In this document: positions 20,401 through 62,312 of the stretch, one piece after another
Layout: each line of letters begins with the position of its first letter
Numbering within the stretch: the first letter of the stretch is position 1
Origin: Bugula neritina
Lineage: Eukaryota > Animalia > Bryozoa
DNA: 64,000 nt
NCBI GenBank assembly: GCA_964035545.1
Contig: OZ037768.1
Location: 19,823,700-19,887,699, forward strand
Direction of reading: 5' to 3'
The notes under the pieces: generated by a model
What the model was told of the DNA's origin: nothing
Database searches by the model: none
The model's input: the letters and a program-made list of their open reading frames with translations, nothing else
Translations under genes and position numbers: made by a program

Positions 20401-23400
20401 TGCTTTAAAGTTATATTCCATATATAGCTATATTATATTAATTTGCATTATAATGTTAATTGGTTCGAAATTTCATTTATTTTAGCTAAACTTTAAAATG
20501 CAAGAATTTAAAGTTTGTTGAATCTAAAAAAGTTGAAAAAGAATTAGCTAAAATGTTAATTTTTTTCAGGATTTTACAAATACTTGTTAGCAGTAAATTC
20601 AGGTAAAAGAGTGATGTTTTCAATACCTGTAATGTACCTGTGGCAGCCCTTCAACTGTATTGTGCCTTACTTGTCGTAGGATATTCCTATACCAGATGTT
20701 TTCTTCCGCCAGGTGCCACAGTACCGAGCACGTCTACAATCCCTCCCACCACACCACCAACAACCCGGGCCCAGCCGTCCTTTGCCCTGGCCTGTAACTT
20801 TGATGATGACGACTGTAATATGTATCAGGAGATGACTAACGACTTTGACTGGAGCAGACACAACGGACCAACGTACAACCTACTCACTGGTCCCGATAAC
20901 GATCACACCCTTGGCACTTTTGAAGGTAGAAATTGTCTTCTTTTTTATTCTATAAACCTCATAGTTTGCATTTTTACTACAAACAAGCCTTCTTTACAAA
21001 GGCCACTGTGCGACTTATGCAATTAGTACTTTTACAGCTTATAAAATCAAAGAATTATTAGTTTTATGAGTTGGAATCGTAGTTGTGATCATATCTTGTG
21101 AAATTTTATGTTTTGGAAATATGCTGAGTGGTGCAGGTACACCCGCACTGTACCTTGTTCTATACAAAAAGTCATGTTTATGTAAAATGATACACACATG
21201 TACACATGCATGCACAAACATACATTTATTTATACATATACATCACATTACATCTGCTATATATGTAATTAAAGGATGTTAAAGTAGCAAATCATATTGA
21301 TATAATACAGTCTAACCAATATTAATTTATGTAAATAAACTTATTTACTTACTGTACATTACACTTTCTAACCTGTGTTGCAGGTCACTATTTGTAGTAA
21401 GTAGATAATGAGAAGCCACACACCTGTAATATCATGTAACCTACATTGGTATATGTAAGATCATTTAACCTACATTGGTATATTTTGTAAGATCATTTAA
21501 CCTACATTGGTATAAGTAATATCATTTAACCTACATGTGTATATATGTAGGTCACTATATGTACATACCATCCAACTACAAGCAGAATGGTAAAAGAGCG
21601 AGAATACAGACTGGTATGATGAATGTTGTACCTGGAGAGAAAGCTTGCCTACGCTTTGCTTACCACATGAACGGCGCAGACATGGGCACACTTAGCGCCA
21701 TTCTAATATCTCCATCTTCTAGGAATCCTATTTTCACAAAATCAGGTAAACATAACTCCAACTGTAGTGGCTAGGATGTGTGACATCATAATGTTGATCT
21801 TGAGAGCTCTTTCCAGGTGTTGTTACTTTAAACGTGTAATGTCTGTTAGTCGGCAGTATTTTATACTTTTCATTATTTGTGTATATTTTGAACTACCCAG
21901 CAATCACTAAAGATACTTCTTGTAGTAATGAAGCCTTATATTTAGCAGTTAAGTTCAAATAACTCTATTTTATGCTTCTCCAAGGACTATTTATTGAAAT
22001 CATTACCAGTAGTTAATAATTAGCTACTTACAGTGTCCTAAAGTGTGGTGCTGATGTCTGCTATAAACAATGACTGCGCTACACACAGAAAATATCTATG
22101 CACACTGTACTGTCAACTTCTTCTTTTAACATGTCACACAATATAGTGCTAACCAGAAATTCATTACTTTGTTCATTGCTTTCCTTATTTCAATCCTCTG
22201 CTTCAAACCTTCCTTTCTATATCTTTTCTCTCTCCTCTTTCCCTCTTTATAGACATTGATCTGTAGAACAAAAACCATGTGTGTTACAAGCTTAAAGCAA
22301 ATCAATCCCAAAATGTATATTGAAGTTTATATCACATATATACTATATCTAATAGTCTATCACTTATACTATATTTAATAGTCTATCACTTATACTATAT
22401 CTAATAATCTATCACCTATACTATATCTAATAGTCTATCACTTATACTCTATCTAATAGTCTATCACTTATACTATATTTAATAGTCTATCACTTATACT
22501 ATATCTAATAGTCTATCACTTATACTATATTTAATAGTTTATCACTTATACTATATCTAATAGTCTATCACTTATACTCTATCTAGTAGTCTATCACTTA
22601 TACTATATCTAATAGTCTATCACCTATACTATATTTAATAGTCTATCACTTATACTCTATCTAATAGTCTATCACTTATACTATATCTAATAGTCTATCA
22701 CTTATATTATATTTAATAGTCTATCACTTATACTATATCTAATAGTCTATCACTTATACTATATCTAATAGTCTATCACTTATACTATATCTAATAGTCT
22801 ATCACTTATACTATATCTAATAGTCTATCACTTATACTATATCTAATAGTCTATCACTTATACTATAACTGATAGTCTATCACTTATACTATATCTAATA
22901 GTCTATCACTTATACTATATCTAATAGTCTATCACTTATACTATATCTAATAGTCTATCACTTATACTATATCTAATAGTCTATCACTTATATTATATTT
23001 AATAGTCTATCACTTATACTATATCTAATAGTATATCACTTATACTATATCTAATAGTCTATCACTTATACTATATCTAATAGTCTACCACTTATACTAT
23101 ATCTAATAGTCTATCACTTATACTATATCTAATAGTCTACCACTTATACTATATCTAATAGTCTATCACTTATACTATATCTAATAGTCTACCACTTATA
23201 CTATATCTAATAGTATATCACTTATACTATATCTAATAGTCTATCACTTATACTATATCTAATAGTCTACCACTTATACTATATCTAATAGTATATCACT
23301 TATACTATATCTAATAGTATATCACTTATACTATATCTAATAGTCTATCACTTATACTATATCTAATAGTCTACCACTTATACTATATCTAATAGTATAT

Positions 23401-26400
23401 CACTTATACTATATCTAATAGTATATCACTTATACTATATCTAATAGTCTATCACTTATACTATATCTAATAGTCTACCACTTATACTATATCTAATAGT
23501 ATATCACTTATACTATATCTAATAGTATATCACTTATACTATATCTAATAGTCTATCACTTATACTATATCTAATAGTCTATCACTTATACTACATGTAT
23601 ATCTAATAGTATATCACTTATACTATATCTAATAGTCTATCACTTGTACTATATCTAATAGTCTATCACTTATACTATATCTAATAGTCTATCACTTATA
23701 CTATATCTAATAGTCTATCACTTATACTATATCTGACACTACACTTGCAGGCACTCAGGGGACAGACTGGATAGTTGCATCCATAGACATAACCTTCAGT
23801 GAGAGCCCAGTGTACTTGGAGTTTGAAGGCATGATTCAGCACTCTTACACCGGGATACATCAAGTGAAAAGTGACATGGCCATAGATGACGTCATTCTGA
23901 CCAATGGAAACACTCAGTGTAGTGATCTAGATCGTGAGTATCGGTTTAGCTTGCGCTACTCTTAAATAATATATGATCGAAGTTGCCTCAATGTGTTTAT
24001 CAGTAGCATTGCTTATAAATTAGTTTTTATGAGGATCTAATGCTCTCTTGATTGTTTAAATGCTCTCTTTGGTGATCTAGACAGAATTTACTGCCTGCAC
24101 ATCTTTTTAATGTTGCGTTCATAATACAGCAATCGCATATCTTAATTCTTAATGTGTGTGTTTAGAAATTTTTTATGATTCTAAAGCCTTTTTGCCTACA
24201 TATTTTATTTAACACACGTCATGATGGATAGAACATTTGTATGAAAAAATGAGATTAGGAGTAAATATCGAATTTGAAACTTTGTAGTTAAACTGCCTTT
24301 TATTCATATCACTGAACGAATTGACACACATTAATTTTGTTCTAAGCAATGTACACGTGTTGTTAGTTGAGAGAGTGTTCAATCCAGTTACTGTTGCTAC
24401 AACAACACTAAGGACAACAGAACATTCTACTGTTAGTACTGCAACACCAACCACCACACCCACACCACCCACACCACCCACAACAAAACCTTGGACAACA
24501 CCAACCACAACACCTTCTCTGATACAGGTAATGTGTATTACATGTAGTGTGTGCTATATTACAATATATGTAATGCAGTATTATATTTGTCATTTAGTGA
24601 TGAGTTTTAGTGTAACAATAATCTATTTTAAATTATTTTTCTGATTTAGTTCATTGAAATATTTTTCATATTTTTAGACTTGTGATTTTGATAACTCTGC
24701 CATCTGTGGTTTCACCCAAGCATCTAACGACCAATTCGATTGGTCAAGAACTAGCAGTAAAGTATGGAGCAGTGATACGGGTCCTTCATTCGATCACACT
24801 ACCGGAAATGGCACAGGTTAGGATTCATCATAACTTCACCTCAATGATTAAACACAAATAGTTTTGGCAGATGTTTTCTGAACTATCCTCATAATTGAAC
24901 GAAGTAAACATAAAATACCAGTTTTATTTGCATGTACTAAAGTGTAACTTGCAAGTGTTGTTTTGATAATTGACTTTAAAGTTTGGACAAATGTAATGTT
25001 AAAAAGTTATTGTAGAAAACCTACCCCTCTCATAGTATTGAATACAATATATATAGATATTTGCTTTGTTTAAAGTATTGTATTCGTTATATTTCTATTA
25101 GTTTTGGATTGTCATTTTGTTAATCTTTTGCAGTCTTTGATCACGTGTGGTTTAGCAGATTTCAGTAAATCTTATATTTATTTACAGGTTTTTACATGTA
25201 CATTAAAGCTGCTTACAAGAACAATGGTTCAGTTGCAAGACTTTCCTCTCCAGTGTATGACAGACCTTCATCTGGTGGAGCATGTCTCACCTTCTGGTAT
25301 CACATGTGGGGCTCTGACTCAGATATGGGTAGTCTGAGAGTCATTCTTCATAAGGGGTTCAGAAATTCTCTTGTATTCAGTAAAAGTGGGAACCGGGGCA
25401 ACCAGTGGCTGTATCAGGCTGTAGACCTTGACATTTTCTCAGCTACCGACTTTCAAATACAGTTTGAAGGTGTTGTGATTCATAATCATGATGACGGACA
25501 TCTGAATGTTGTTTTGGGAGACATTGCCATAGACGATGTTGTAGTTGATCGTTCAGGGCCGTGTTCTGGCCTTTCCACCCCCTCTACCCCCTCTACCCCC
25601 TCCCCCTCCACCCCTGCTACTTCTTCAAATCCTGGTGTTGGTGGAAGCAGCTCAACTCCATCTAAGGATGTTACTACACCTCAACTGAGCCAGGTAGGTC
25701 ATGTGACACTCAATTACCAACATTGTGGGGGTCAGAGAAATGCAATAAAAGGCAAGATTTGCAGTACTCCGCCTATTTCAACAACAAATTGTATAGTAAA
25801 AGAGTAATAGTATAACACAGTAGTATAGTAACACAGTATTTCAGTAATATAAATAAGTAGTAGTGTAGAAATTTAGCAATCTATTATTAAAGTAATAGAT
25901 AATAAAATAGTAATATAGTAACACAGTAATATATTGATAAATTGTTATAGTGATACATAAATAGGGTAATACAATAAACCAATAATATAGATATAATAAT
26001 ATAGTTATGATAATACAGTGATATAATAACACAGTGATATGATAGAAGTAGTGCAATAAGATCAGCAATGGAATAGTATAAAACTCATATACTCATATGA
26101 CTACTGGACATGTTTTAATAAGAATGAGCCTCTCAGCATTTTCATCTAACACAAAAATCATCAGCTTATGCTGGCTTTAATAGGATGCTGTGAGATTCAA
26201 TAATTATTAATTTAGCATAAAGTGTGGGCAATTTTATCAAAACAACTTGAATTATGCTAAAACTATGCTTATTACTACATAGTTTAGTAATGTCAATAGT
26301 AACCCAGGTGTAGGACAATAGCATGGAGGATAAAATATACTTTGTTTGCTATAATTTGGTTGTTTTCGCATAACTGATACATTCATTCATGCATTTTACA

Positions 26401-29400
26401 TTAGCATTGATTATAATTTGAAAACTTTTACTATAGTTCTTGAATGTAATGTTTTGTACCACTCTGCTGTTGTTACAGGCTGAGAGATGTAACTTTGACA
26501 GCTCTGCTATTTGCGGCTTTACTCAAGCATCTAACGACCAATTTGATTGGTCAAGAACTAGTCGTAAATCATGGAGTAGTAATACAGGCCCCTCATTCGA
26601 TCACACGACTGGTAATGGTACAGGTAAGTGTGTTTGTATACATTTAATTTTTTTATGAAAACTTCATCACATACTATACTTTATGACTGGAGTTCTATAT
26701 TACATACATACATATGAAAAGCACTTTTGCAACTTCAAATGACTGCAGAGAAACTGAAATCATACATGTTTGTCGGACTCCAGAATCTCAACTGGTAGTT
26801 AGAAGTCTAAGCTCAACATATTGCACCATCTCATATATATAATTATATATATACATTAACTATATAAAAATATATATATATATAAATATATTAACATATA
26901 TAAGTATATATAAAGTGCGTGCAGTGCTGTTAATTGTTCAGCTTAGAATTTTAATTACTATGAGTTAAGATTTTGGTAACCATGTCTGAATCCAGTTTTT
27001 CTAATAATTTGAAGTTACAAGACTTTTTTAATAAGTTTGCTATAATTACACAGTAATAGAATTTACTATTTTAACATGGAGTTAGTGATACAGGGTGATT
27101 TATACTACTGGTTGCTCAGTGCTAAATGCGTGCTTAAACATCATAGTATTTTAAGTGTGATATATGATAGCAATTATTATTTTATGCAAATTCATAAATT
27201 TTCATTTGTTGGTAATCACAGAGTTTTGGCAAATAATTTTACTGTGATAAATTCTGTTTCCAAATCGCAGAGCATTGCTTTTTTTTAGACAAAACCTTCA
27301 ACATTTAGCTGAGATAACGAAATCTTTGAATAGCCCCATTTTCAATGTTTTTCAGTTAAGTTTGGAGCGCAGTGAAAGATTCCTCAAGAACAGATTATTT
27401 TGCAAGAACTTTTCTTTTTAAATCAAGTTTTTTTATTTTTTTAGAGTTTCACACCTGCTTTGCTATACTAATAATGCTCAATAGAAAACTCACGCAAGTT
27501 TATAGTCACTATCCCTGTGAGAAACCCCTGATAGAAAAGGTTTTTGCTAAAGCGGGCTAAGGACTTATTTAAATGAGGCACAGAAGCAATTATGACTGGA
27601 TGCTCTTCCTAACATCACCAATGGCCTTTGTCAGGGCTCGAACCCATGACCTTCGTGTTTACTAGGCAAACGCTCTAACCCCTAAACCACGGCTGCTCCC
27701 TAATGCTCAATAGAAAATAAGCTTTAATTTATTTCTTACTGGATGGTGAATCACCGGCTTTCCATGTACCGATCTCAGATCGATCTCAGGCAGATCGATC
27801 CATGGAAAGACGCCAAAGATCGATCTCAGTCGTTCTGAGCTGGTCGGTCTGTAGAGCTCGAACTCAGATCGATCTTAAGGCAATAAGACCATGGAAAGAC
27901 GCCAGATCGATCCGAGAAGTAGAAAAATGACTGCTCGCTAAAATGTTGTCTGCTAATAAAAATGATAACTTATTGTTAATTACTAAGCAAAGTACTTAAT
28001 AATTAAGATAGCCACCTTTTCAAGTGGCAAAACTTTGACTTTCAGTAAAATGATTAGGAAAACTTAATTATGTAAAATTATGGACGGTAGAAGATACAAA
28101 AAGTGAGAGTATTTAAATTGAATTTAAATGACTAGTATAACGCACTGTCATTAGTTATTTGCTGCGTAATTTTAAGCCTAATAGTCCCGTAGGTTTATGA
28201 ATGAGCTGCACAACAGCTATTAATTTTATATAAGCTGTCAAGCTAAAATATTAAAATTAATTATCTTAAATTGGCCAAATTACTCCATACTAAAAGCTTT
28301 ACTGCGTAGAGTTTATAGCTGACGGTAAATTTTAGACTATGAAAATTTTGTTTTTCAACAGCAGTAGCTTTTATCACTCAGGTGGGTGAAAAAATTATGC
28401 TATTAAAGTAGTCTTTACCTAAGAGGAGGCAACTCCGAGAGATCGATCTGACACTCTCATGGAAAAACGATCGATCTGAGCACATGTCTCAGATCGATCT
28501 CATCGAGATCGATCTGAGATCGGTACATGGAAAGCCCGTGAATTTCAATCATTTAAACACTGGGTACAGCTTACACATGTATTTGTTCACAGGTTCTTTC
28601 ATGTACATCAGAGCTTCTTACAAGAACAATGGCTCAGTTGCAAGACTTTCCTCTCCAGTGTATGACAGACCTTCATCTGGTGGAGCATGTCTCACCTTCT
28701 GGTATCACATGTGGGGCTCTGACTCAGATATGGGTAGTCTGAGAGTCATTCTTCATAAGGGGTTCAGAAATTCTCTTGTATTCAGTAAAAGTGGGAACCA
28801 GGGCAACCAGTGGCTGTATCAGGCTGTTGACCTTGACATCTTCTCAGCTACCGACTTTCAAATACAGTTTGAAGGTGTGGTGATTCATAATCATGATGAC
28901 GGACATCTGAATGTAGTTCTGGGTGACATTGCCATAGACGATGTGACCATTTACCAGTCAATGACTTGTTCTAGCCTTCCTGCCACACCTTCTACAGCAG
29001 CAACGCAGACAGTAACCACACCCACACTTCCAACTAGTTCTAAGGCTTCCACAACTACACGCCCTCCAACTACGACTCTATCCACTAAAAGTCAACCAAA
29101 AACATCTAAAGCTACACCCAGTACTGCACCTCCGCCAACCCAGGTGATCTATTATGTGAATCTGTAACACACAATGTTTGATTATGCAGGTCAAGTTTAT
29201 GTAATAAATTTATGGGTAGCACAGCACATGATGGGAGTATAGATAGCGTTAGTATCGCAGTGAAGATCAGTAGTAAACCATAAAGATGTAACGTAAATGA
29301 CATTTGTCAATGTATTGCTTTTTTTAGATATATTATATACACACAAAACGTATAGCATTATACTTATATATTATTGAACTGTGTTGTACATGTAATAACT

Positions 29401-31729
29401 GTAAAATAATCTCTATAATAATCTATAGTACTTTACTATTTTTAGATCAAAAAGTGCAATTTTGATGATACAACTTTATGTGGCTTCACTCAAGAAACCA
29501 ACGACCAATTTGATTGGTCGAGAATTAGCCGTAAAGTATGGAGTAGTGAGACTGGCCCGTCATTTGATCACACGACTGGAAACGGCACAGGTTAGAGGTT
29601 TTCTGTTATTTTCTAATTTCAACGCAAACTATGCCTTTACGTGAAATGCTCAAAGATTTATTAGTATTTCATAAGTTTGCAAGAAGTGCTAGAGATGAGT
29701 AAATTGAATATTACACTCACTTTACTCTAAAGTCACCTACTCAATTGGTGTCGGTGTATAGTCTGGAATATTTGTTTTAATTTTCAATTTCATTAATTGA
29801 ACTTGTTAGTTATCAGTATAAATTATTTGTATTAGTCACTAGTATAACTAGGGACCAATTTTTTTAGTAGTTAGTACAAGTTGCCAGTAACTAAAAGTAA
29901 TATTCATTGTTGCCATATATGCCCTGGCAAGTTATTTCCTATTTTGAAAATTAATTTGACTTACAAATTTATTTACAGGTTTTTACATGTACATCAGAGC
30001 TTCTTACAAGAACAATGGCTCAGTTGCAAGACTTTCCTCTCCAGTCTATGACAGACCTTCATCTGGTGGAGCATGTCTCACCTTCTGGTATCACATGTGG
30101 GGCTCTGGCTCAGATATGGGTAGTCTGAGAGTCATTCTTCACAAGGGGTTCAGAAATTCTCTTGTATTCAGTAAAAGTGGGAACCAGGGCAACCAGTGGC
30201 TCTCTCAAACTATCGATTTGAAGGTTGCTGTTGACTTTCAAATACAGTTTGAAGGTGTGGTGATTCACAACCACACTGACGGACATCTGAACATAGTTTT
30301 GGGAAACATTGCCATAGACGATGTTGTAGTTGATCTCACTGGGTCGTGTTTTGGCTCACCCTCAAACTCGGGGCAAAGTGCAGGTTAGTGCTTTTAGCCT
30401 AAAACGTTAAAACCAGTAGATGTTGACTTATGTTGAAACTCAAGAAATTCTAATTTTTAATTTTACATTACTATAAATTACAAGTTTCTCTGTGCTTATT
30501 TACCAATATGTTTGCCTTAATAACTACATAGTCTTTACAGACTATATAATACACGTGTATCTTGTACAGATATCAAGTTGGATGACTTCAACATTACCAC
30601 CAAGTACTGCAACACAGTGCAAGATGGCAAGTTCCAATAAACGATTATTAATTGTATTAAATTGATATACTCGGTTGTATTGCAGGACCCACAGCTAAAG
30701 GAATGAATGGAGGTGTAGTGGCTGCTACTGTAGTCTCCATACTTGTTGTGCTGATTCTAGTGGCTGTCGGTCTAGCTGTCATTTATATGAGAAGAAAGTA
30801 AGTAGGAGCTCATGTCATAGCTTGAGAGCATGAGACAATGTGGGGGGGGGGTTGGGATCCTGACACAATTACTGAGAGAGGAAAACATTTGTATACTGTA
30901 ACTTCCTTCTAAAACCATTCAGCAGTTGTTTATTAAATTATTTAACTTTAGAAACATATTTTAATGCATTTTTTTGGTGCCAGTATTATCTTATCACATA
31001 GTTTTATTTGTGGGTTTATTCAGCCGTAAGCTTTTCACTTTGTGTTCATATAGCCACAGCAGTTATGTCATAGTATCTGCTTACTCACAAAAATTGGTCT
31101 TCACACATCTTATAATCACAACTATTTAATATTTAAAAGTTTACGGGTTGATTGCAGTTTTACAAAAAAATTCAGTAGAAATTTCTATGCGAAATGAGTT
31201 ATTTATAATCAGGTTTTAGCAATTTCTGCATGTGCTTTGTATTTCATAGCTTTATATAAGAGAACTGTATTTGGAGTTAAGTATGCTATTGGCAGGTGTT
31301 AAACATGTTCGATTCTAGCTCCTATATTGTCTAAATTGCCATGGTTATTATGGACTTCATTTGTATGAGCCATAAACCTGATATATAACAAACAGAATTC
31401 AAAAACTGACAAAGTAGTGTTCAGCAGTATTTAGCCTGCATTGTGTGTCTTTAAGCATTTTTATATTATTTTAGTTCTACAATGATTCGTTTAACTGGAG
31501 AAATGCATATTTTTGCAGGCAAATCTGGATTTTTGCTCCTGGAACTAAAATGTCTGTGATATTCTCAAGGACTTCATCTGAAGAGACTGGATATATCTAC
31601 GACAAGTTCAACAATGATGGAGTAGATGAAACTTCCGTACAACCTACACTGGTTATCAATGGCTTCGGCCAAGATAGTAAATCTAATGGCGTGTTTAACC
31701 CAACATACAGCCTAGAGGCTGAAGCATAA
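14409..31729 (+). CDS. Single-pass membrane protein with six MAM domains, S/T/P-rich linkers and a cytoplasmic NPxY motif (MAMDC/MALRD1-like, no LDLa repeats)
   Basis: Exons: 14409-14463 (signal peptide MQQLRGILILLLALPHLT), 14756-14938, 16502-16708, 17026-17208 (MAM1), 18106-18315, 18664-18849, 19777-19920 (MAM2), 20713-20925, 21551-21745, 23751-23933 (MAM3), 24367-24527 (mucin-like), 24678-24816, 25188-25693 (MAM4), 26479-26623, 28593-29143 (MAM5), 29446-29590, 29979-30383 (MAM6), possible 30570-30626, 30686-30797 (TM helix VVAATVVSILVVLILVAVGLAVIY-MRRK), 31519-31729 (tail ending GVFNPTYSLEAEA*). Recurrent MAM motifs CxF(D/N), TGPxxDHT, CLxFWYHMxG, GNQGNQW, GDIAIDD. All junctions are phase-compatible. 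Confidence 0.9.
17258..17456 (+). mobile_element. tRNA-derived SINE, same family
   Basis: TGGTCTAGGGGTTA...GCCATTGGTGATGTTAAGAAGAGCATCCAGTCATAATTGCTCC...CTTGCGTGAGTTTT. Confidence 0.85.
19228..19765. repeat. 21-bp minisatellite interrupted by a MITE
   Basis: GAGATACATACTATATAGTC(C/T) x5, then the MITE, then about 2 degenerate units. Confidence 0.85.
19335..19717. mobile_element. PIF/Harbinger-type MITE inserted in a 21-bp minisatellite
   Basis: TIRs AGGCCTGGCCACATACTCGTGAGAAT / ATTCTCACGAGTGTGTGGCCAGGCCT with a TAA target duplication. Confidence 0.85.
20070..20320. repeat. About 21-bp minisatellite
   Basis: Repeated ACTGTCATTGTATTATATATT variants. Confidence 0.85.
22340..23735. repeat. Long homogeneous 26-bp minisatellite (about 53 units)
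   Basis: TATACTATATCTAATAGTCTATCACT repeated head-to-tail for about 1.4 kb, ending about 15 nt before the acceptor at 23750. Confidence 0.97.
27489..27700 (-). mobile_element. tRNA-derived SINE (MetaSINE-like), full length
   Basis: Box A-like TGGTTTAGGGG, box B GGTTCGAGCCC, core GTTAGGAAGAGCATCCAGTCATAATTGC. Perfect 17-bp TSD TAATGCTCAATAGAAAA at 27472-27488 and 27701-27717. Confidence 0.9.
27752..28540. mobile_element. Non-autonomous DNA transposon with CAC...GTG termini (CMC/Chapaev-like, tentative)
   Basis: About 36-bp TIR CAC(C/G)GGCTTTCCATGTACCGATCTCAGATCGATCTC at both ends, AAT on both flanks, many subterminal GATCGATC and CATGGAAA motifs, no transposase ORF. Confidence 0.85.
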
Positions 31730-42057: not shown

Positions 42058-44834
42058 TTAGACATCACAGCTTGTTTCTGAGTTGGTGTCATGCATGTCA
42101 ATGTTTATAGAAAATCTGAATTTGCCTTCCTTCAAGTGTTCAGTGTAAGATTGAAAAGCTAAGGCTAAACAACCTGCCAGCCGTTTGGCACTCCTAGATG
42201 AGTCACATGCGTACACGTGACACTCCATGGACTTGCTCTGAGATGACATCTCTTTCACCATTATAAAACAGAAGATTCTAGAGTATTCTTTATCCTGCAT
42301 CCCATATGAAATAAACTGTATCGGGATCTGTACTGGTCTGAAGCATTTAATTTTGTTCTTGCTGTGTGGTCGCATGGCTAAACCCTCATAGTAGACATCC
42401 AAATTAACCAATGGCAAGTCCCCTTCTACAGGCATTTTATTCACGCTATCTATAACGGCTTCTATTACTGGCTGAGTGTGTTTTGAGCCCCACAGACCTT
42501 TGCAAGGTCTGCTCCCCATGTACTTGACAACAAACCCACGAGGGAGCAATGGCGTGGCAGGTGCTTCTTTATCATAGAAATTGCTTTCAGAAGATTTCCT
42601 ATGAGATGCTCTTTTTCCTTTGTCTTTAGATGACAATTTTCTTCCTTTTCTGTGAGATATTTCATCTGATTGTGACCCACTTCGCCTTATAGTAGTCTGG
42701 ATGCCCATCTCCTGAGTGTCGGTACTTATGCTGTGTCGACTGCTCTTTCTGTTGCTGCCAGAGTGCCTGCTATGAGCTGCCTCTGTAGACTCTGTACTCT
42801 GCCCACTGACTGTACTTCCTACACTGGTTCTACTAGTTCTGCTTGTCCTACTGGACCTACTCAATTGCCTCTGCAAATCGTCTTTACGTCCATCATTACG
42901 ATAAAACTCTTCTAATTCTTCATCATTCATTACTGGCTCCTCTGTTTCAGCTTCTTGACTTCTCGCCAGTCTTGATTTCTACAAAGAAATTTTATTGGTT
43001 GTTAGTAAGGATTGTTACTGAGCTTGCTGCCTCATTTCAGATAGTAATACAAGTAATGTTAACAGTTATAGTTTCACTAGTGAGTTGTAACAATGATTTT
43101 ACTCTGTCTGAGAAATCAGGTTATGAAAATTTACTGACAAAAGTGAGATGTTGTTGGTTTGCAAAATTTAGCTAGTCGCTGTGAGGGGTGGTACGCCTGA
43201 AAAATGCTAGACAGTGAAAATTCTTTGGAAAATAAATTTTTTGCCATATCTCTCATCCATCATTTAATTACTGCACTTGCCTCACATTTAGCAGAGTGAA
43301 AAGTTGTAATCACTTAAAAAAGTCTAGATATATACCTGCAGGCATGCATGGTGCACATTTTAATGAAAATATTTATATGCTACAGACATTTCTCTCTTTA
43401 AATGATGCTGTTCACAATGACATCATTGAAAATAGAAAGGCGGCAAGGTAATAAATTGGTGGTAGAGTTTACAAATAAGCATTATGTAAAGCTCTGTACA
43501 TTATTCATTAGCTGTAGCTACTTGGTAGAAGCAATGCCACTTGGCATTAGAGTGGGCATGTGTATTGTGTACAGTTCTACTTTGCAAATTAACAAGATGC
43601 ATGTTTGCTGTTCATTTATTTTTCAATGCATTATGCAATCAGTTATATACTTTCGTTAACCTGATAGTTCATAACATGGTAAGCTAATATATAGGACTAC
43701 ATGTCACCATATCAGCCTAGTCAGACTATCATATTAGAACAGCCTAGTTATATACATGACTGTAGGTTATCATATGAATCTATTGAGAGTAATATTATAT
43801 TGGAACAGCCGTTATATTATGAGAGTAATATGTAGCATTAGGTGTTGCTTAATAGGCTTGCTATTCATCAAATAACGCTAAAGTAATGCTGGAAGAATAA
43901 ACAGGGGCTATTAGCTGAAACCGGCTTCTATTAATCAAGAACACTTGAATTGAGTCAATTTAAAAATTCAAAACATTTCAGTTTTAGTATAGAGCAAGTT
44001 GTAAACATCAATTATATTTTTAGTGCCCCTCATGGATTTGAAATAATTATTTCAAGTAAAACAGCACTTTTTTCTGACTTAAATTGATTAGCCAATAATA
44101 TTTGTGTTATCAAAACCAGCAGAACATAGTAGGATTAAAAGCTCTCTTCATTATTTAGTTTTAATCAATCAGCATTCTGGTTAAGCATATCTGCCAGAGA
44201 GCACCTGTTTACTGTGACATGGTCACAAGTACCTGAGACTAGTAGTCAGAAAGTGCTGTTAGAACATGACAATAGTCAGCATCTGATTAGTTTAGATTTG
44301 AAAATATGCTACTAATTTGTAAATAAATACAATGAATTATCTAATGCCTATCCCAGTCGAAACATGGACCAAGTAGGTCATAGCAATTAATGATTGGTTT
44401 TAAAATACTCTTATACTCCTGCTCTACCCATATGAGTGCAAAATTCAGGATTTTTATTTAGATTTGGACTTATGAAAACTAGACACGTATGTAATGTATG
44501 CATTATCATAATATTAGGTTGAATTGTCTTTTTGAAACTACATATCAATTGAAAATATGCCTTTACAGCTTCTATTGTTGAAGTAACAATAACCTATAAC
44601 CCAGTGACTTGTAAGAAATCTACTGCTATTTTAGCACTTATCTATAAAACAACAATTGTGTATTTGGCTTTCAAAATTCTGTTTTGGACAGATCACCTTG
44701 AGCTGATCGCGTCTCAGAGTACCAATGTGCAGCCTCTCCAGGACGTCACTGACTTCACCAGTTTCAAGTTCCCCCTTCACTGGATAAGTTATCTCTGAGC
44801 TGACATTCTCACTCTCCATGTACAAGTCAGTCAT
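42058..44834 (-). CDS. PTB (phosphotyrosine-interaction) domain adaptor, LDLRAP1/ARH invertebrate-like family
   Basis: Exon 44834-44697 (phase-0 donor AAG|gtgatc) joins exon 42978-42058 (acceptor ttctttgtag|AAA) in frame. PTB motifs FVVKYMGSRPCKGLWGSKHT, IPIQFISYGMQDKEYSRIFCFI, ECHVYACDS...AKRLAGCLALAFQ, preceded by an S/R-rich disordered region. The true start may lie further upstream (acceptor at 44870). Confidence 0.85.
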
Positions 44835-47800: not shown

Positions 47801-50800
47801 ATATTATATATTATTATATATTATATAATGCATTGTACATGTATATTTGTTATGTATAATATTGTATTACACCATATTTTATTATATATAATGTTTTATA
47901 CATGATGTTATAATTTGTATTATGGATAATATAATATATAGTATTTTGAGTAATATTATGCTTGATATTATATATTATACATGTATATGTGATATATATG
48001 CCATGCATAATATTAGAATTTAATTTAGAATTACAAATATGGTAATCTACGTAAAATTATATATACTGTACATAGTGCTTCAGATTGATAAAGATATATA
48101 TTTTATTTAAAAAATCTCAAATGACTAAATAGTTTTGCACAGTGAACTGCACTCTTCAGGTGTCAGACTAAAAATAAAAAAGCTATATATATACATACAC
48201 ATATATATATATAAAACTATAAAATGAAAATAAAGCTTCTGCTGTTTTTTCTAAACCAATTAATTTAAGCCAATTAAAAGTAGAGTAGCAAAATTATTTA
48301 TTGATAGATAGTTGTTAAAAGAATAAACTAGTTTTTCAATTACAAATTTTAATTTTGAGGATTTCATTTCTCAGCCCCTGCCAGAATATTATAGTACTAA
48401 TATTATAGTTAATATTACAAATGACTTTGGTTGTATGTTTAGTAGAGTTCACAGACCCTTAAACCAGAAAAGCATGAACTTCAAGAATTTGCCCTGCAGC
48501 TACAAAATAAGGTCTTTGATTACTTTTATTGCTGAGAGAATTGACTTAACTGACTTTCCCATCAAGTTCCTAAACTGCCTGCAGCAAAAAACTTGCAAAG
48601 CATTTCCGCTCAACTCAGGAAGTGTAGTTAAAATAAACTTTTTTATGCCTTGGAACTTCTGGCAAAAACTGGCCGCGTTACATGACTAGCATGAATGCCA
48701 GAGGATATGGTGTAAAATTCGAAGCCCTTGATATCAAATTGTGCAATAGAGAAAATTTTTTATAGAGATTACTACTATATGCATAGAATTTTGACTACCT
48801 ATGAGGGGCCATAATATAGCTTAGAATAACAGCTTTTTGTACATGTTTTTTCCATGCGATTTGTTTTTGAATTATTGTAGCCATGTTTGTTTATACATAT
48901 GGAGTTAATCACATAATAATTTATAATATAAATTGCTTTTGATTTTTCCATAAATTGAACACTAAAATTTGTGCAAAGTGCTTATAGTTGCACTCTTGCT
49001 CTTATAAGTTATGCGGACATCTTAATCCATACCCTATTGTTAAGTAAAACTTTTATTACAGGATGTAAGACAACTTTAAGATATTGTTCTAAATTATTTA
49101 CAATAATATTTATCCATTTTTATTTTGGAAGCAGCTATTATATCCTGATGTTGGTATTGGTAGATGAAAGCATTTTTACTACTACTATTCAAAATATTCT
49201 TATATATCTTTTACACATTCTCACCTTGCAGAGTATATGGCTTGTATTTATAAAGGTAATAAAGTTGATATGTGTTGTAATCTTGAATCAGGTTATCACA
49301 ACATTTTTTCTCTGTTTTATTATTTTATATCACCTTGAACAAACGACAAAATCCTTAGCCTAAATATTGTAATCAGAGTCTTATAACTTGATAAATTCTA
49401 CACTACAACATCATTACAAAATATGAAGGTTTTTTTTATTCTGCAGTCCTATGATAAAACTTTGAAGTGGGCTACATAAAAAGGAAAACAATCTCTGAGA
49501 TTTTAGACCGTATAAAACATAATAGCAAATGATCTTTAGTATGTAATGTTTATAATAATGCAGTGTATAAATGCCACCATACACAGCTAGATGACTCAGT
49601 GCTATAAAGACTATATAATAATCCTCACAAGTTGCAAATAAAAGTGTTTCATATACATAATAGAATATGGATGTACCTTTGCACACAGCATATTCTTATA
49701 TAGTTTATAACTTTTAATGTTGTAGTGAAAGTAACACAGATTCCTCTTGATTTAGAAAGATTCTATAGTATAGCATTTTATTTTTCAGCAAATCTTCAAT
49801 TACAGTTTCTCAAGGTCAAAAACAACCACAATTAAATTAGAGTTGGTATTTTATTCATGTGTGTGATAAGGTATATAATTTATATTGTGCAGCTTTCGAA
49901 ATAATGGGGAGAATATTTAACCATGAATACTGCTATTTTCGATCTATGTCACAGATGTTATTTCTGAGCTGAACCCCCCACATTCTATAATAAGTTGCTC
50001 ACACTCGCATTATCTAGTTATACTCATAACAAGACGTTATCATTTGGTAAGTTTGAATATAATATCTAAATTTGCATAAAAGTTCCATTTATTGATAATG
50101 TAAAAATAGGCAAACAAATTAAAAACTTCGCTAGGTGTTATAGAGAGTTTGAGAAACTTTGCTTTTGTAAGACTTGTATTAGGAATAGGCAGAAATATCA
50201 TGGTTTTGTCAATTTTAAAAATTTCCTTTTATATAAAAGTTGTTTTGGAGTAGCTACTGGTTTATATAATAACCTGCCATATAAATGTTGCTAATTTAGC
50301 AGGACAGAAACCTATTACTGCGTTACTTAACAACTCATCTAGTTAGTTTACTTGCTAGAACATTTGTATTAAATTAATTTATATGGTTTTGCCGTAACTA
50401 ATTGCATAACTATACTTTCTAAAAGCCACTTTGTTACAGTATAGAATGGCAATACAAGAGAATGAGGAAGAGACATTACGCATGGGTGAAATAGGTGAGA
50501 GTTCTATATTCGTTTAGAATTAACTAATGCCGGGACCAGTTTATATTCTCCTGAGATAAAAATAAATCATACTTGATTTGTTGTATATTGGAAGTTTTAT
50601 TTATTTCACAGTACAATTAAAACAGAAATCCCATTGGTACGCTACACCATACAACATAAATAATCAAATAGATTGAAACACTTTTCCATAAAAGTTCTTT
50701 TAATTAGTAATTGTCAGTTTGAGTGCTTCCCCAGCCAGCTTTTCTACAAATATACGAGAAAGATTAACTTTTAGATGCATGAACCGTTTAATTATTGTGT

Positions 50801-51574
50801 ATGTTATTATGCATTGGCTCATTCAGCAATTCCTCATGACAATAGTACATATACCAACGCAGTGGATGCATTTTAGCATAAAATGCTATTTTAGTTCTAA
50901 TAATTTATCTATAAACCCAATTTAGGCATGCTTGCAAAAGCACAGGTGGTGTAAAGCAAAAACTTAAAGTACCCAGGTTTGCGTTAAAAATCATCAAATA
51001 TATAAAGGCATTGATTTTTGTAATTATAATTCAATTTTGAATTATGAATAAAATAGAGTTGCTCAATAAAATTTTCTGATTGGTCATTATAGTAGGACAG
51101 CAGCTGCTTGAACAAAGTTTAATACTCAGATCTCAAATAACATTAGCCGTACTTTGGTGATAATTAAAATACTTTAGAAAATAAAATAGTAGCTATTTTG
51201 GGGCAGGACTTTAAGTAAGTTTAATATGTGATAGTAAAAGGAAATTTTTAGCCACAAATTATTACTCTAAAGCATTATTAACAGAAAAAGCTCATGCTTC
51301 TTATTTCTATCGGCCCTGTACTTGCCAAAAGATAATAAAAAATATTTTAACAATTCAATTTATAGTTTTCCTTTTATAGTAAAAAATATTTATACATAAT
51401 TTTAGCCAGCAGTTTTTACAAAATAATTTGTAACCTTTACTTAATTTTTAAATTGCTATTTTGCATACAAAACTGCATTTTATAATATTTTAAAAAAAAT
51501 ATGCATGTTAAATTACAGCTTTGTTACTATTGCTAACAACCTAAATAAAAACTTTGAATTTAGGTTGGTATTAC

Positions 51575-52721
51575 CTAGTGAGAGATGATTTTTCTCAGTA
51601 GACTTTGTAACTTAAAACTAGGAGTAGAGCGGTGAGGGTGGGGAGGAGTAGTGCGCCCTTCATTCACATAGAAGTTCTTGGCTTTGCTTAGTCTTTCATA
51701 TTTCCCTTTAGCATGGCTTCTTTTACTATGGAATAGAAAGTATAAAATGTTTATTGCTCTCACAATAGTGTTTATTATTTCAATAGATATTAGTTGTTGT
51801 TATGACGCATTTCATATGAAGTGGTCAACAATAATATTATTTGCAAAACATTTTTACTTATAAGTGCCTACCTGGAATATAATTTTGTTTTTGTTTGCTC
51901 AATTTTTACATCATTTCATATAATTATTATATGCAACAAGACATCAATACTTTGTAATCAATATACTTTATTATTGTTTTACGCTTTCAGTAGGTTACTC
52001 TAAAAAATTATTTGTAGCCACTCAACTTTGGTATATTCTACCCAATAATCAATTTCACTTCCTGCTGATAGTATTATTTTAATAAAATATAAAAAATCTG
52101 AAAAATAGGCAAAGAATTAGTTCTGTGTGATAACTATCTTTAATTGCTATTGAAAATAATGATTTAGTTTATTATGAGGTAAATTATTGTATGCATACAG
52201 TTTTAAATTACAATATAATTTCAATGAAGCAATCACCACTGACAATGTTATCAATATGTTTGTTATATAATGTACAGGTTTTGAAAAGAAAGATTAAATA
52301 ATATGACATTATAATATATTATATTAAATCATACCCTATCATAATAATATATTATATTATATTATATTAGGTCATATTACATCATTCAACAACATATTAT
52401 ATTGCATTATATTATAATATATTATACTATATAAAGTTTTTGTCATGAAAACCGAAAAGTGGAGACTTAGTCATTTAAAATGAATAAAGTTGCTTCAGCA
52501 CTAAGATTTCCACACAACCAATAATAAAATTAATGCTGCTACCTGACAGAACTCCCATAAGAAAAGTAGCCTCTCAGACTATTCAAGTACTCTTTCAAAT
52601 CAGCAGCTGACTGGAAAGGTGCGGGTATGTCAGGCATCGTAGTCTGTCCACCAACTGTCACTATACTCAGCAGCAACGTCATAGCACCCAGCCCCAATAC
52701 TAGTCTCATCCTCAGATACAT
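51575..52721 (-). CDS. NPY/NPF-like neuropeptide precursor, copy 2 (atypical, predicted non-amidated)
   Basis: Exon 52721-52543 encodes signal peptide MYLRMRLVLGLGAMTLLLSIVTVGG plus PP-fold-type QTTMPDIPAPFQSAADLKEYLNSLRGYFSYGSSV and ends AG|gt at the phase-2 position conserved in NPY/NPF genes. Exon 51725-51575 encodes (S)KR-SHAKGKYERLSKAKNFYVNEGRTTPPHPHRSTPSFKLQSLLRKIISH*, alignable with the copy-1 C-terminal peptide. Non-coding exon 1 ends at 53552. Confidence 0.8.
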
Positions 52722-53643
52722 TCTAACAAGTAGATCACAGTCTAAGCTAATCACTGCTCGGATCATTCATGCTTAACTTAACGAAAGTGAAGATTAATGT
52801 TTTTATTTATCTTCTACAGTCTCCTATTTTTGAATATTATATTAACCAGCTTAACATTTGTTAAGTTTTTTGAGTATGAGATGTGCAATGTGCAAGAAAC
52901 ACTAAATTGCATTATGCAAGACTAAAAGCTAGATATGAATGCTTAAAGTAATTTTAAATTATTCTTTGAAAGCACCTTTTCCAAGAGCTAGTTTTTTTTG
53001 TAACAATAAAATAATTTTGCAGTTTTAAAACAGCTTGATTAAAGTGGTGAAAACGTTTAACATATTTCATATTTAGTCCAGACATTTGGAAGCTTCAATT
53101 AACAAGATTGCTGTAAACATTAATACTAATTTAATGCCTTTAAGGGGCTAAAACCATATTAAACTTGCTCAATGCCATACTTCTCACGGTAAGACACATT
53201 TTTATTCTTATGTTGCTATTTAGAAAGCTTTAGCACTTTTGATAGTTTTAAGAAATAAAACAAATTTTGAATAGTAATGAAGCATTATTGCTAAACTCTA
53301 TTTACACGCACAAATGCACTTGTCAAAAAACGCTTGGAAAACTTGCATTAAAATCCCTAAGGGTGTAAAGTCTCTCATTTTTTTTCCTTTTGCATTAGTT
53401 AGGAAATACTGAGACCACACCTCAAAGTGATCAAGCTACTCTACTCAGCTAATTTGTGCATTTGAACGCATAGAATTCAGCACTTCTCTCTAAAATTATA
53501 AGACTAAGTAGAGATAAGCAAAAATGTTTTTATAATAAGTATATTTCATACCTTTATGATTTGATCACTGATTATATAGCCAAGTAATAGTAGCTGCAGC
53601 CAATGGTGGAGATAACGTTATAGTGTTGATAAATAAAAAAAGC

Positions 53644-53657
53644 CTTCTTTATATACT
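53644..53657 (-). promoter_or_regulatory. TATA box of NPF-like copy 2
   Basis: The same 14-mer AGTATATAAAGAAG as copy 1, followed by a short non-coding exon ending AAG|gtatga at 53552. Confidence 0.75.
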
Positions 53658-58570: not shown

Positions 58571-60492
58571 TTACATAAAAGCATTATCTATCAAAGTTGG
58601 ATATTGAGCTAGAGTGCAGAGCTGGAAACCCAGCTATGAAATCAACCAGTTTCTAAAGCTTTATCTGTAATAATTTACAAGCACTGAAGTGGTGAATGAA
58701 CTCTTGGTGTGATGAGATCACCTACTGAAAACTACAGAGCCACAAGACAGATAGTAAAATAATAATACAGTAAACATCAATCTTTCTGCATAGAGATTTT
58801 AAATCATTTTATAGTATTTCCTTAGCCAACCCAACACAAAGCACCAACTAACCAACGGCACTAAATATTACATCCGGCTCCTATTAACAGCGCAAGATTA
58901 TATCTGTTACTATTTCTGTATAATGGTATTAGTATTAGCACTATAATGTACATGATTTTATATAAGGTTGATAGTTCTTCTAGACATTTATTATTCAATA
59001 TTGTTTTGCCATATTTATTGAGTGTGGAATGTAATTTAATTAATATTTGAATGTACTATTGGAATGCTTTGATATCCCATAAAATGGCTAACGTAAAATT
59101 GGAGTGAAATAGACTAAAACATTCTATTATTGAATTTTAAAGATCTGATATAAACATTTGAAAATACTGCAAACATATCTGTTTATATCTGATAGCCAAG
59201 GCAGCGTTTATACAAGTGAATTAAATGTAACGCAACAGTATATGCTTCTAAAGTAATAAAAGTTGCTAAACTGCAACAATATAAAAAGCAAGAAAGTCAC
59301 TGCATTTTCATTGCTTAAAACAAATCCATACTGATGCTCTTGTAGATTATAATGGTTGTGGTTTGATTTGATGCAACTGCTCCAATGCAAACTGTTCTAC
59401 TAAAATCCATCCTTGTAGAAATTCTTTATTGAAGCATTCATTTAAATATATTTGTAGTGAAATGATGACACTCTTAATGCATTTCAAAGTCTTTGCCTCA
59501 AGCTTAAGTACCAAAGTTTAACCGATTTCAAGTAAAATGGTCTTTAAAACTGGTTCAAAGTCAGTGACTAGCTGATAAACTCATTTTATAGAACATAGAT
59601 ACTGCAATGCTTAATTTGAATGACAAGTGACGTTCGAGCAAACACTACTAGTAGCTAATATAAACACATTTTGGTTGGGTTTGTTCAACTAGACCTTTTA
59701 TTGCAATAATTTATATTTTAGTCACCATAATGTAAAGCAAAGGTCTGGTGCAGCTAGTACTGTTGCCAAGTACAACATACTGAACATAGATATTACAAGT
59801 ATATAAGGAGTATTCCTTTTGAAACATGCAAAGACAATAGAGTTGTAACATAATTACTGTTTTTGCTATCACCAATAGATAATGTTATGGCAAAAACAAA
59901 CTAGCTATTGTCCATAATAGCATTGGCCTATTTATGACTATAAGTTATAGACAGAAAAGACATTAAAATACCAAGTTTTGTTTTAATCTGTGTATAACAT
60001 TCATCATTTCATCAAGGCTAATAAAATCTTTGATGTGTTAAACATTACATTATGATTATATTTTAAGTTGAGTGCATGTATCTAGGTTAGGTGAATAAAT
60101 AGAGCAATACATTTCAATGTCGAATAAATCGTGCAGCCAATCACAATTTATTTAATCGTCTACTTGGTAATTACATAATATATTTTGTCGAAACATATCT
60201 AAAAAATCACAACTTTTAGGAATTGTCTCTCAATGTAGGTATTCATTCTTCTGGTACCATTGGCTTTATATGGTTATATCTGTTTCTACAAACATATAGA
60301 CGCATGTTTTATAAACACATATTATACCAATGTCACATAAGTACTGCTGCAGAAAGATATATAGTAATAGGAACTATACATGCTACGATGCCTACAAGAG
60401 TAATAGGAAGCTTGAAATTGCACTAGATAGACATCTCTGTGTTTACTCGCAAGCTGAGTTGAAACAGCCTTCAACTTTAAACCTCCCAGAGT

Positions 60493-61869
60493 TTAGCTGC
60501 ATGCAGAGGTATTGCGAATCATCAAAATATTTATATATGTACAAGTAGTACTTCGGTGAAAACATTTTAATCTTGCGAGCTGCTGGAAATGAACAAAAAA
60601 CAACCACAGCCTTTGAAAACAAGAGTTTTTTGGATTATTTTAGGGTAATTTGATAGAATTTTTTATCAATAAAAATCATTTCAGAGAACAAGTTACCATT
60701 ATTTTAGCAAATTATTATAATTTGCATGATGTCTAGCCCAATGTTGGTTTGAAGCAAACTAATAGATTATATTAAGGCTTTCAGCCTTACCTTAGCTTAG
60801 GAAATAGTCTCCCAAATATGCTTCCGAGCGGAGGGGTAGAGGAGGAGTAAGCAGGGTAGTTGAGAGGAGAAGGAGTTGTCGTCTCTTGGTTCATATAAGA
60901 CTTTGGTTTGTCATGGCCTTCCTTATAGTCTCTTTTACCAAACCTAATGAAGCCAATTAATAAGCGTCAGGTAAACAAACTGTGTACTATTCCAAGTTGA
61001 TTTTTCAATGCACTTTTGAAATTATACTTAATTTTCATTGACTTAAGCTTAACGGAGTAATTAGTATCTGAACAAGATATATTGACAAAATGTCAGTGAA
61101 GTGTAGACATGGACCATGGTGTTAATAGAATTAGAGCAGAATGTCTAGCTTTAAGCAGATACCTTTAAGAAAGACATCTGTAAGGCACTGAATAATTGGT
61201 TTAAGTCTGTGGGCTGCATACATCAGCTTGTGATTTTAAATAAATGTCTCATTTAGTTTATTGGATTAGTTATTTTACTGATGAACTTGATAAATATCTA
61301 ATCCAGTAGCATATGAAACTTTTATGAGACATTACTTTTTATTAGAGTGCTGCTAATTATTGAATAAGATAGTATGTAAAATATTCTACATTAAATATTA
61401 AGATAGGTTATCATTTAAAAAATTAAGCAAAAACCTTCCAATAATAAAAAGATGAATAGAAGATTCAAACAACAGTTAATAGTAATTATGGAAGTATATT
61501 GAACTTTCTGGTATAATGACATCCAAACATTCAAGCTCCTGGCAGTATAAATTCACCTTACAAGGTAATGGTATGCCAGGTACAACCTCACCTGACAGGT
61601 TATTTGTATGCCAGGTACAACCTCACCTTACAGGGTATTTGTATGCCAGGTACAAACTCACCTTACAAGGTAATGGTATGCTAGGTACAAACTCACCTTA
61701 CAGGGTCGTTGTATGCCAAATACTCTTCCAAGCTTTTTAGATACTGTTTTAGCTCCTCTGGTGACTTGAATTTGCTTTTAGCCTCTGGTGGTTCGGCACT
61801 GCTGACTACAGCTGTACTGAGAAACAGCACGGCTGCCACTGTCAGAAATAGCCTGACTAAGTTAGCCAT
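60493..61869 (-). CDS. NPF: Neuropeptide F/Y (NPF) precursor, copy 1
   Basis: Exon 61869-61697 encodes signal peptide MANLVRLFLTVAAVLFLSTAVVSS plus AEPPEAKSKFKSPEELKQYLKSLEEYLAYNDPV. A phase-2 intron splits the Arg codon (AG|G). Exon 60943-60791 starts F-G-K-R (amide donor plus dibasic site) followed by a C-terminal peptide. Probable last exon from 60496 (AG|C TAA). Non-coding exon 1 ends at 62206. Confidence 0.9.
61545..61718 (-). repeat. 35-bp tandem repeat of the NPF exon 2/intron 2 junction
   Basis: Minus-strand unit GGCATACAAnnACCCTGTAAG|GTGAG(T/G)TTGTACCT, 5 copies. Confidence 0.92.
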
Positions 61870-62298
61870 TCTTTTGTCTAGTTTCAACAGATAAACAACT
61901 CTATATTACAAGTTGCATTGCATTGTGTAGTTTTAGTTTGCTAAAATTTAATACCATATACATTACAAAGCAGGACTACTGCTATGCAATGACGACACTT
62001 TGACCTAAAATATTTGTGTTATGTTTCTACAGCAGCCAGTATTCAGCTTTTATAAAATTCCTTCAACAGAAATACAATTAATGCTCACCACGATTATTTA
62101 AACTTCTTGTTTTGAGCTAAAAATAGCCTATACTGCGCTTAGAATAAAATAAATTGACCAAATACTTATTATATTTTTACAATTGAATACCAAATTTAGT
62201 CTTACCTTAGTTGTGATATTTATAGTGACAAAGCTATTCTTTTAATCAATCGCTTAGCAGCACTACTACAGCAGTAAATGACATTTAGATTAGTGGGT

Positions 62299-62312
62299 CT
62301 TCTTTATATACT
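62299..62312 (-). promoter_or_regulatory. TATA box of NPF copy 1
   Basis: Minus-strand AGTATATAAAGAAG about 30 nt upstream of an Inr-like TCATTT (62281-62276), followed by a short non-coding exon ending AAG|gtaaga at 62206. Confidence 0.75.

Follow-up and report, generated by a model that had tools for sequence, protein, structure and literature searches.

The 64-kb window, the whole stretch of DNA analyzed here, has the composition of AT-rich eukaryotic DNA and carries two NPF-type genes in tandem on its minus strand, copy 1 at 60.2-62.3 kb and copy 2 at 51575-53657. Across bilaterians, no part of NPY/NPF peptides is more conserved or more essential to their function than the RF/RY-amide tail. 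Copy 2 is predicted to be spliced without this tail, and it is probably a real, selectively maintained NPF paralogue that lacks the RF-amide. Most likely, its peptide addresses a different target, or its C-terminal peptide is functional. If copy 2 is maintained in this way, it would be a natural experiment on the capacities of the fold alone, without Arg, Phe, and the amide donor, and it could show how duplication and the loss of an old pharmacophore yield a new peptide signal. Should its peptide also be expressed and act on another receptor or modulate NPF signaling, a new peptide signal would have arisen from NPF in bryozoans and been kept by selection in at least two species. Copy 2 adds an unannotated gene to the small known set of bryozoan neuropeptides, and the Bugula NPF locus is a tandem pair. 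If copy 2 is silent, it would be simply a well-preserved relic.

Tandem NPF-type genes at the bugulid locus

A 15-kb stretch of the B. neritina assembly GCA_010799875.2 (locus L005) is collinear with the window at 50.5-63 kb, with 82-84% identity in the non-coding DNA. Since the two loci are collinear at this level of identity, the window species appears to be a bugulid close to, yet distinct from, the B. neritina of GCA_010799875.2. These two species make up the cross-species comparison described below. In searches of the window species' own genome, the exon-2 peptides of copy 1 and copy 2 each retrieve only the other, and a genome-wide scan with PF00159 gave credible matches at the copy 1 and copy 2 loci only. 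The weaker PF00159 matches L003 and L004 in the genome scan are not NPF genes.

We identify copy 1 as the orthologue of the published, RACE-confirmed BnNPF-like gene (...NDPVRFGKR). BnNPF-like (GenBank KX095879) is a single B. neritina cDNA that Wong et al. (2016) cloned via RACE, and its mature peptide ends in ...KSLEEYLAYNDPVRFGKR, with Pro in place of the first Arg of RxRF (PMC4990251). Copy 1 encodes the same core as the published mature peptide, and all NPF primers of that study (PMC4990251) assign to copy 1. On the minus strand, the promoter and exon 1 block of copy 1 (62206-62312) contains the TATA 14-mer AGTATATAAAGAAG (62299-62312) and a non-coding exon 1, which is matched by a published RACE primer at 62212-62235 with 3 mismatches and ends in the donor AAG|GTAAGA after 62206. 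Exon 2 (61697-61877, ATG at 61869) encodes ...YLAYNDPV plus AG, matches the published peptide, and ends at 61697 in the donor ...CCT GTA AG|GTGAGT. The PF00159 score of this exon is 28.3 bits, and that of the B. neritina orthologue is 31.0 bits. Exon 3 (60791-60943) begins at 60943 behind the acceptor ...cattag|G TTT GGT AAA AGA. Its first G completes AGG (Arg), after which the exon encodes FGKR and the C-terminal peptide and ends in the donor CTA AG|GTAAGG. The junction thus reads ...DPV-R|FGKR (V-R-F-G-K-R) and is split by the phase-2 intron of the family.

The coding part of exon 4 (60243-60285, minus strand) encodes …RNRYNHIKPMVPEE and a stop, and a published RACE primer lies at 60243-60265 with 1 mismatch. 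The sequence-only reading had ended copy 1 at ...KLR*. This end is refuted: CTA AG|GTAAGG forms a donor at 60791, from which the frame continues into exon 4 at 60285, and since the published RACE primers match both exon 1 and the fourth exon, copy 1 does not end there. NPY/NPF genes are reported to carry one intron that splits the Arg codon of RF/RY in phase 2 and another within the C-terminal region (bioRxiv 10.1101/712687). The gene structure of Mair et al. (2000), in the form given by this review (bioRxiv 10.1101/712687), places the intron between the second and third base of the penultimate codon. The layout of copy 1 matches exactly the reported layout of NPY/NPF genes.

Several features of copy 1 vary between the species. 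The B. neritina copy 1 protein P0002 has the C-terminus ...KLRSRYNHV, and the tail encoded by exon 4 diverges, with ...RNRYNHIKPMVPEE-stop in the window and ...RSRYNHV-stop in B. neritina (L005 about 5215-5238). One RACE primer, designed for a Hong Kong B. neritina cDNA, has 1 mismatch to the window and no match to L005 within 2 mismatches. A 35-nt tandem repeat (61545-61718, minus strand) begins within the final 20 nt of copy 1 exon 2 and duplicates both the exon end and its donor, ...CCTGTAAG|GTGAG, with 5.0 copies in the window and 2.7 in B. neritina (L005 3881-3976). The repeat units therefore create several look-alike donors after the real donor, each 35 nt further and out of frame. In the draft L005, at about 3731-5238, a single nucleotide of copy 1 exon 2 is missing when compared with the window and with a JGI contig (L006/P0001). 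This gap probably explains the garbled B. neritina protein EB796_016520, which is P0002 (…LFLITRGAKTVLKSLEEY…). The exon is intact in the published cDNA and in P0001.

Gene structure and splice junction of copy 2

Copy 2 appears to be an intact NPF paralogue with a promoter, a non-coding exon, a signal peptide, NPY-like spacing, a KR site, and an open C-terminal peptide, as the sequence-only reading had described it. The statements of that reading on the junctions of both copies and on the elements of copy 2 were confirmed on the minus strand, to which all copy 2 coordinates here refer. A TATA-containing 14-mer at 53644-53657 is identical to the copy 1 14-mer. In both copies, a short non-coding exon begins about 30 nt downstream of AGTATATAAAGAAG, and the motif CTCAGCCCTA lies 35-39 nt upstream of AGTATATAAAGAAG. 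The promoter block of copy 2 shows 93-97% identity with B. neritina. The putative non-coding exon 1 (53552-53625) is modeled by analogy with copy 1 exon 1, with its 5' end placed about 25-30 nt past the TATA box and the donor AAG|GTATGA at its 3' end. It is 90% identical to the B. neritina sequence, where the donor is kept.

Exon 2 of copy 2 (52543-52722) follows the acceptor ttgttag|A and contains 59 codons plus AG from the ATG at 52721 to 52543, encoding the signal peptide and 34 NPF-like residues. Its donor is ...TCT GTC AG|GTAGCA, and the exon is 93.3% identical to that of B. neritina with no indel. A further in-frame ATG at 52764-52766 (minus strand) lies 45 nt upstream of this start, within intron 1 just before the exon 2 acceptor. 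Since a 21-nt deletion removes this upstream ATG in B. neritina, the ATG at 52721 is taken as the start. Intron 2 (51726-52542) is a GT..AG intron in phase 2 at the conserved position of the family. Exon 3 (51575-51725) begins at 51725 behind the acceptor ...ttctattccatag|T AAA AGA. Its first T completes AGT (Ser), giving ...SSV-S-K-R, and the 47-residue C-terminal peptide follows the KR site and ends at TAG (51577-51575). The exon is 95.4% identical between the species with no indel. Immediately after the stop, the sequence is GTAATA. The second intron in the C-terminal region is present in copy 1, and in copy 2 a conserved GT after the stop is accompanied by a look-alike acceptor at 50744. 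A candidate 3'-UTR exon would span 50590-50743, with the acceptor tatttgtag|AAAAGC, which resembles the acceptor of copy 1 exon 4, and with AATAAA at about 50600-50605; this block is about 95% identical between the species.

The splice that joins exons 2 and 3 is the sole conserved, frame-keeping one, and it is predicted to remove R, F, and G, as the sequence-only reading had claimed. The B. neritina copy 2 has the identical donor and acceptor (tatag|TAAAAGA) and shares the stop and both open frames. The junction residues are ...SSV-S-KR in the window and ...YGSPV-S-KR in B. neritina, both without RFG, and in neither species does the copy 2 peptide end in RxR[F/Y] with a Gly amide donor behind it. 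No other acceptor has a better pyrimidine tract than the modeled one (16 and 15 of 20), which also has an AG-free zone of 35 nt. Exon 3 has a single open frame in both species, which is the one set by the RFG-less junction. We searched both species for an acceptor or micro-exon that restores the amidation signal and found none: the scan covered every AG of the copy 2 intron and of the next 1 kb or so (4 kb for the window species), and none of these AGs precedes R[FY]G or, within 10 residues, G[KR][KR]. Other acceptors were considered and rejected. The one at 50397, which gives SYG..., leads to an early stop. The in-frame acceptor at 51758, 33 nt upstream, is not conserved, is out of frame in B. 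neritina, and has a poor pyrimidine tract. The modeled acceptor, being the first AG, is more likely than those 6 and 9 nt downstream of it.

There is no sign of an assembly error at the copy 2 junction, since the same junction occurs in the second species and Logan contigs are identical to the window. These contigs (51371-51871 and 52468-52779) reproduce both junction regions with zero differences and come from a DNA run that is possibly the assembly's own sample.

Since the B. neritina copy 2 is also without RFG, the loss predates the split of the two species. The sequence-only reading had ascribed it to a 6-nt shift of the acceptor. The loss of 6 coding nt at the acceptor stands. The route may have been a shift or a deletion of GTTTGG, which yields the identical sequence. 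Under the acceptor-shift model anchored on TAAAAGA, 8 of 13 positions agree between copy 1 and the B. neritina copy 2, and under the GTTTGG-deletion model with an unchanged acceptor 4-6 of 11 positions agree. An acceptor shift, in which the old AG is lost and GGT becomes AGT, and a 6-nt exonic deletion fit the intron ends about equally, and in paralogues this old the intron ends do not discriminate between the two.

Conservation and detection of copy 2

The comparison with B. neritina indicates that copy 2 is maintained, in agreement with the sequence-only reading. The copy 2 coding exons are identical at 311 of 330 positions (94.2%) and the introns at 1272 of 1544 (82.4%; Fisher p=4.8e-9). 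At the intron rate, the chance of 19 or fewer differences in the coding exons is 1.5e-10. The coding exons contain no indel, against 5.6 expected in 330 nt (P=0.004), and the introns contain 29. Both exon frames are open in both species, which is the outcome of only 12% of neutral-substitution simulations. The dN/dS of copy 2 is 0.40 (8 synonymous and 11 non-synonymous changes), a value that is marginal when taken alone (one-sided p=0.055). For the same species pair, copy 1 has a dN/dS of 1.12 (4 synonymous and 15 non-synonymous changes); its changes are located in the N-terminus and the flanking peptide, and the peptide core is invariant. Constraint on copy 2, measured in this way, is no weaker than that on copy 1. 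The sequenced individual has 0 heterozygous sites in the 330 coding nt of copy 2, compared with about 50 in 2,271 non-coding nt, and the Poisson probability of this deficit is about 7e-4, an approximate value given that the variants are clustered.

Conservation at the locus is not all coding, since parts of the introns and a downstream block are also conserved at 90-97%. In intron 2 of copy 2, the blocks 51930-51865 and 51850-51748 show 90-97% identity amid non-coding DNA of ~82%, and so does the block 51060-50600 downstream of copy 2. Neither a conserved open frame nor an Rfam family was detected in these non-coding blocks. All of them may have a regulatory role, and the downstream block may instead be a 3'-UTR exon.

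A search of sequencing runs for the copy 2 locus returned one DNA-type run and no RNA run. The word-index search of a protein database with copy 2 exon 2 gave no match, and the two matches from an exhaustive HMMER search were repetitive, unrelated proteins. Metagenome contigs yielded nothing for the copy 2 protein query or for a conserved 28-mer. In a control search, copy 1 retrieved only the ORF of a genomic exon and a single mis-annotated protein of B. neritina, and the published cDNA protein was missed. Since the search also missed the published copy 1 protein, the absence of copy 2 from the databases carries little weight. No gene is called at copy 2 in the annotation of the B. neritina assembly, and copy 2 is not among the published Bugula neuropeptide transcripts (PMC4990251).

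Family relationship and possible products

Copy 1, or BnNPF-like, and copy 2 are alike in the TATA 14-mer, the non-coding exon 1, a signal peptide followed directly by the peptide, the pattern Px..P..F..LK.YL.SL..Y..Y, the phase-2 intron at the same codon, the KR site, and a Thr/Pro-rich C-terminal peptide. The exon 2 products of the two copies are 33% identical, and the phase-2 donor ...GTC AG|GT of copy 2 is homologous in position to ...GTA AG|GT of copy 1, which places the family intron in copy 2. On the other hand, copy 1 ends in ...PVRF-Gly-KR, an amidated RF with an atypical Pro, whereas copy 2 has Ser-KR without Arg, Phe, or Gly, and the frame of copy 1 enters a fourth exon whereas that of copy 2 stops at the end of exon 3.

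Compared with canonical NPY/NPF (PF00159), copy 2 is alike in precursor layout, the intron in the penultimate codon, and dibasic cleavage. Its precursor consists of a hydrophobic N-terminus with a predicted signal cleavage site, a 35-residue peptide, KR, and a 47-residue tail. Together with the two lost residues, the peptide amounts to 36 residues, with P5, P8, Y20, L24, and Y27 at NPY positions. An AlphaFold model of copy 2 exon 2, with a mean pLDDT of 66 and an alignment of only 4 sequences, shows, with low confidence, a coil at residues 27-38 and a helix at 39-55; a helix at this place would agree with the PP-fold. Copy 2 differs from canonical members in that RxR[F/Y]-amide is absent, the penultimate codon is Ser, and the Pfam score is low. 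PF00159 is the top Pfam match for copy 2 exon 2, at 20.4 bits (E=5.5e-4) in the window and 21.7 bits (E=2e-4) in B. neritina, below the curated cut-off of 28.7 bits in both species. Judged from its sequence, copy 2 is a derived NPY/NPF descendant that keeps the architecture of the family and has lost its pharmacophore, and it would not be a functional member of the family.

Among the eleven npy genes of planarians, npy-11 is described as 'atypical', since it is without the C-terminal aromatic residue and keeps the gene organization (Collins 2010, PMC2953531). Schmidtea mediterranea npy-11 and copy 2 both belong to expanded or duplicated NPY sets and both retain the gene organization of the family. 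By the description in PMC2953531, npy-11 is without the aromatic residue, whereas copy 2 is without Arg, the aromatic residue, and Gly together, and the two losses are independent events in different phyla. The atypical C-terminus of npy-11 therefore provides a precedent for C-terminal decay in an expanded NPY family. In the literature searched, we found no case in which Arg, Phe, and the amide donor are all lost and constraint between species can also be demonstrated.

In the proposed pathway, splicing would make the penultimate Arg codon AGT (Ser), with KR directly behind it and no Phe or Gly donor. By general prohormone processing, the signal peptide would be removed before Gln26, the precursor would be cut after KR, and the basic residues would be trimmed. 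The predicted product is a 35-residue peptide that is secreted, has a free carboxyl group at its end ...YFSYGS[S/P]VS, and probably begins with Gln or pyroGlu. The 47-residue C-terminal peptide is a second predicted product. The loss of RFG came before the species split, and purifying selection would have acted on copy 2 since then. Our tentative proposal, held with low confidence, is that copy 2 is expressed as a secreted, non-amidated peptide that has kept the helix and lost the tail and now acts on another receptor or modulates NPF signaling.

The loss of the RF-amide could instead have inactivated copy 2, leaving a dead or dying gene in which disabling mutations are still to come. The missing family-defining C-terminus, the marginal dN/dS test, and the lack of an expression trace in the run, protein-database, and annotation searches are consistent with such a gene. 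However, the loss is older than the species split, and the exons are still 94% identical as against 82% for the introns (p=5e-9), with 0 indels where 5.6 are expected, a frame open in both species, conserved promoter and splice sites, and no heterozygous sites in the coding exons. Since copy 2 is not intron-like despite the age of the RFG loss, a decaying pseudogene is unlikely. The conserved blocks of intron 2 (51930-51865 and 51850-51748) and the in-frame acceptor 33 nt upstream in the window species might point to a true transcript with another acceptor, a micro-exon, or an alternative last exon that restores the amidated end. This is very unlikely, as no AG within the intron or roughly 1 kb beyond it (4 kb for the window species) gives R[FY]G or, within 10 residues, G[KR][KR] in either species, the upstream acceptor, with its poor pyrimidine tract, does not keep the frame in B. 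neritina, and the modeled acceptor combines the best tract (16 and 15 of 20) with the 35-nt AG-free zone.

Even if copy 2 is expressed and spliced as modeled, the NPF-like part may be a scaffold or pro-region, and activity may reside in the 47-residue C-terminal peptide or in fragments released by cleavage at its RK site. In copy 2, the C-terminal peptide has changed at 4 of 49 residues (dN 0.036), compared with 9 of 50 in copy 1 (dN 0.102), and is somewhat better conserved than the NPF-like part of the same precursor (dN 0.067). We nevertheless regard this as distinctly improbable, since the counts of changes are very small, the helix part of the NPF-like peptide is conserved too, and the C-flanking peptides of the NPY family are without established function (Collins 2010, PMC2953531). 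As for the NPF-like peptide itself, the amidated tail of NPY is the part buried in the receptor core of the Y1R-NPY structure, in an acidic pocket that disfavors a free carboxylate, and non-amidated NPY does not signal (PMC8844075). Because of this burial and the lack of signaling, canonical NPF agonism by the copy 2 peptide would be excluded in principle. The sequence-only reading had suggested that the non-amidated peptide is an antagonist or decoy at the species' own NPF receptor. The helix and N-terminal residues of NPY also touch the extracellular loops of the receptor (PMC8844075), and copy 2 retains the NPY-like spacing of prolines and aromatic residues. Since the acidic pocket disfavors the carboxylate, however, orthosteric antagonism is unlikely, and we consider an antagonist or decoy most improbable. 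We prefer the reading in which copy 2 is selectively maintained and either its peptide has changed target or its C-terminal peptide is functional.

No Rfam family matches anywhere in the window. Elsewhere, long open frames on the plus strand at 16453-30388 contain a near-identical repeated domain (…CLTFWYHMWGSDSDMGSLRV…) followed by Ser/Thr/Pro-rich stretches, for example at 25196-25807, 28484-29167, and 29987-30388. By eye, the repeated domain is MAM-like, and the frames form an apparent tandem array of exons or genes. On the minus strand, a 290-residue open frame at 42058-42930 has a Ser/Arg-rich N-terminal half and a globular C-terminal half.
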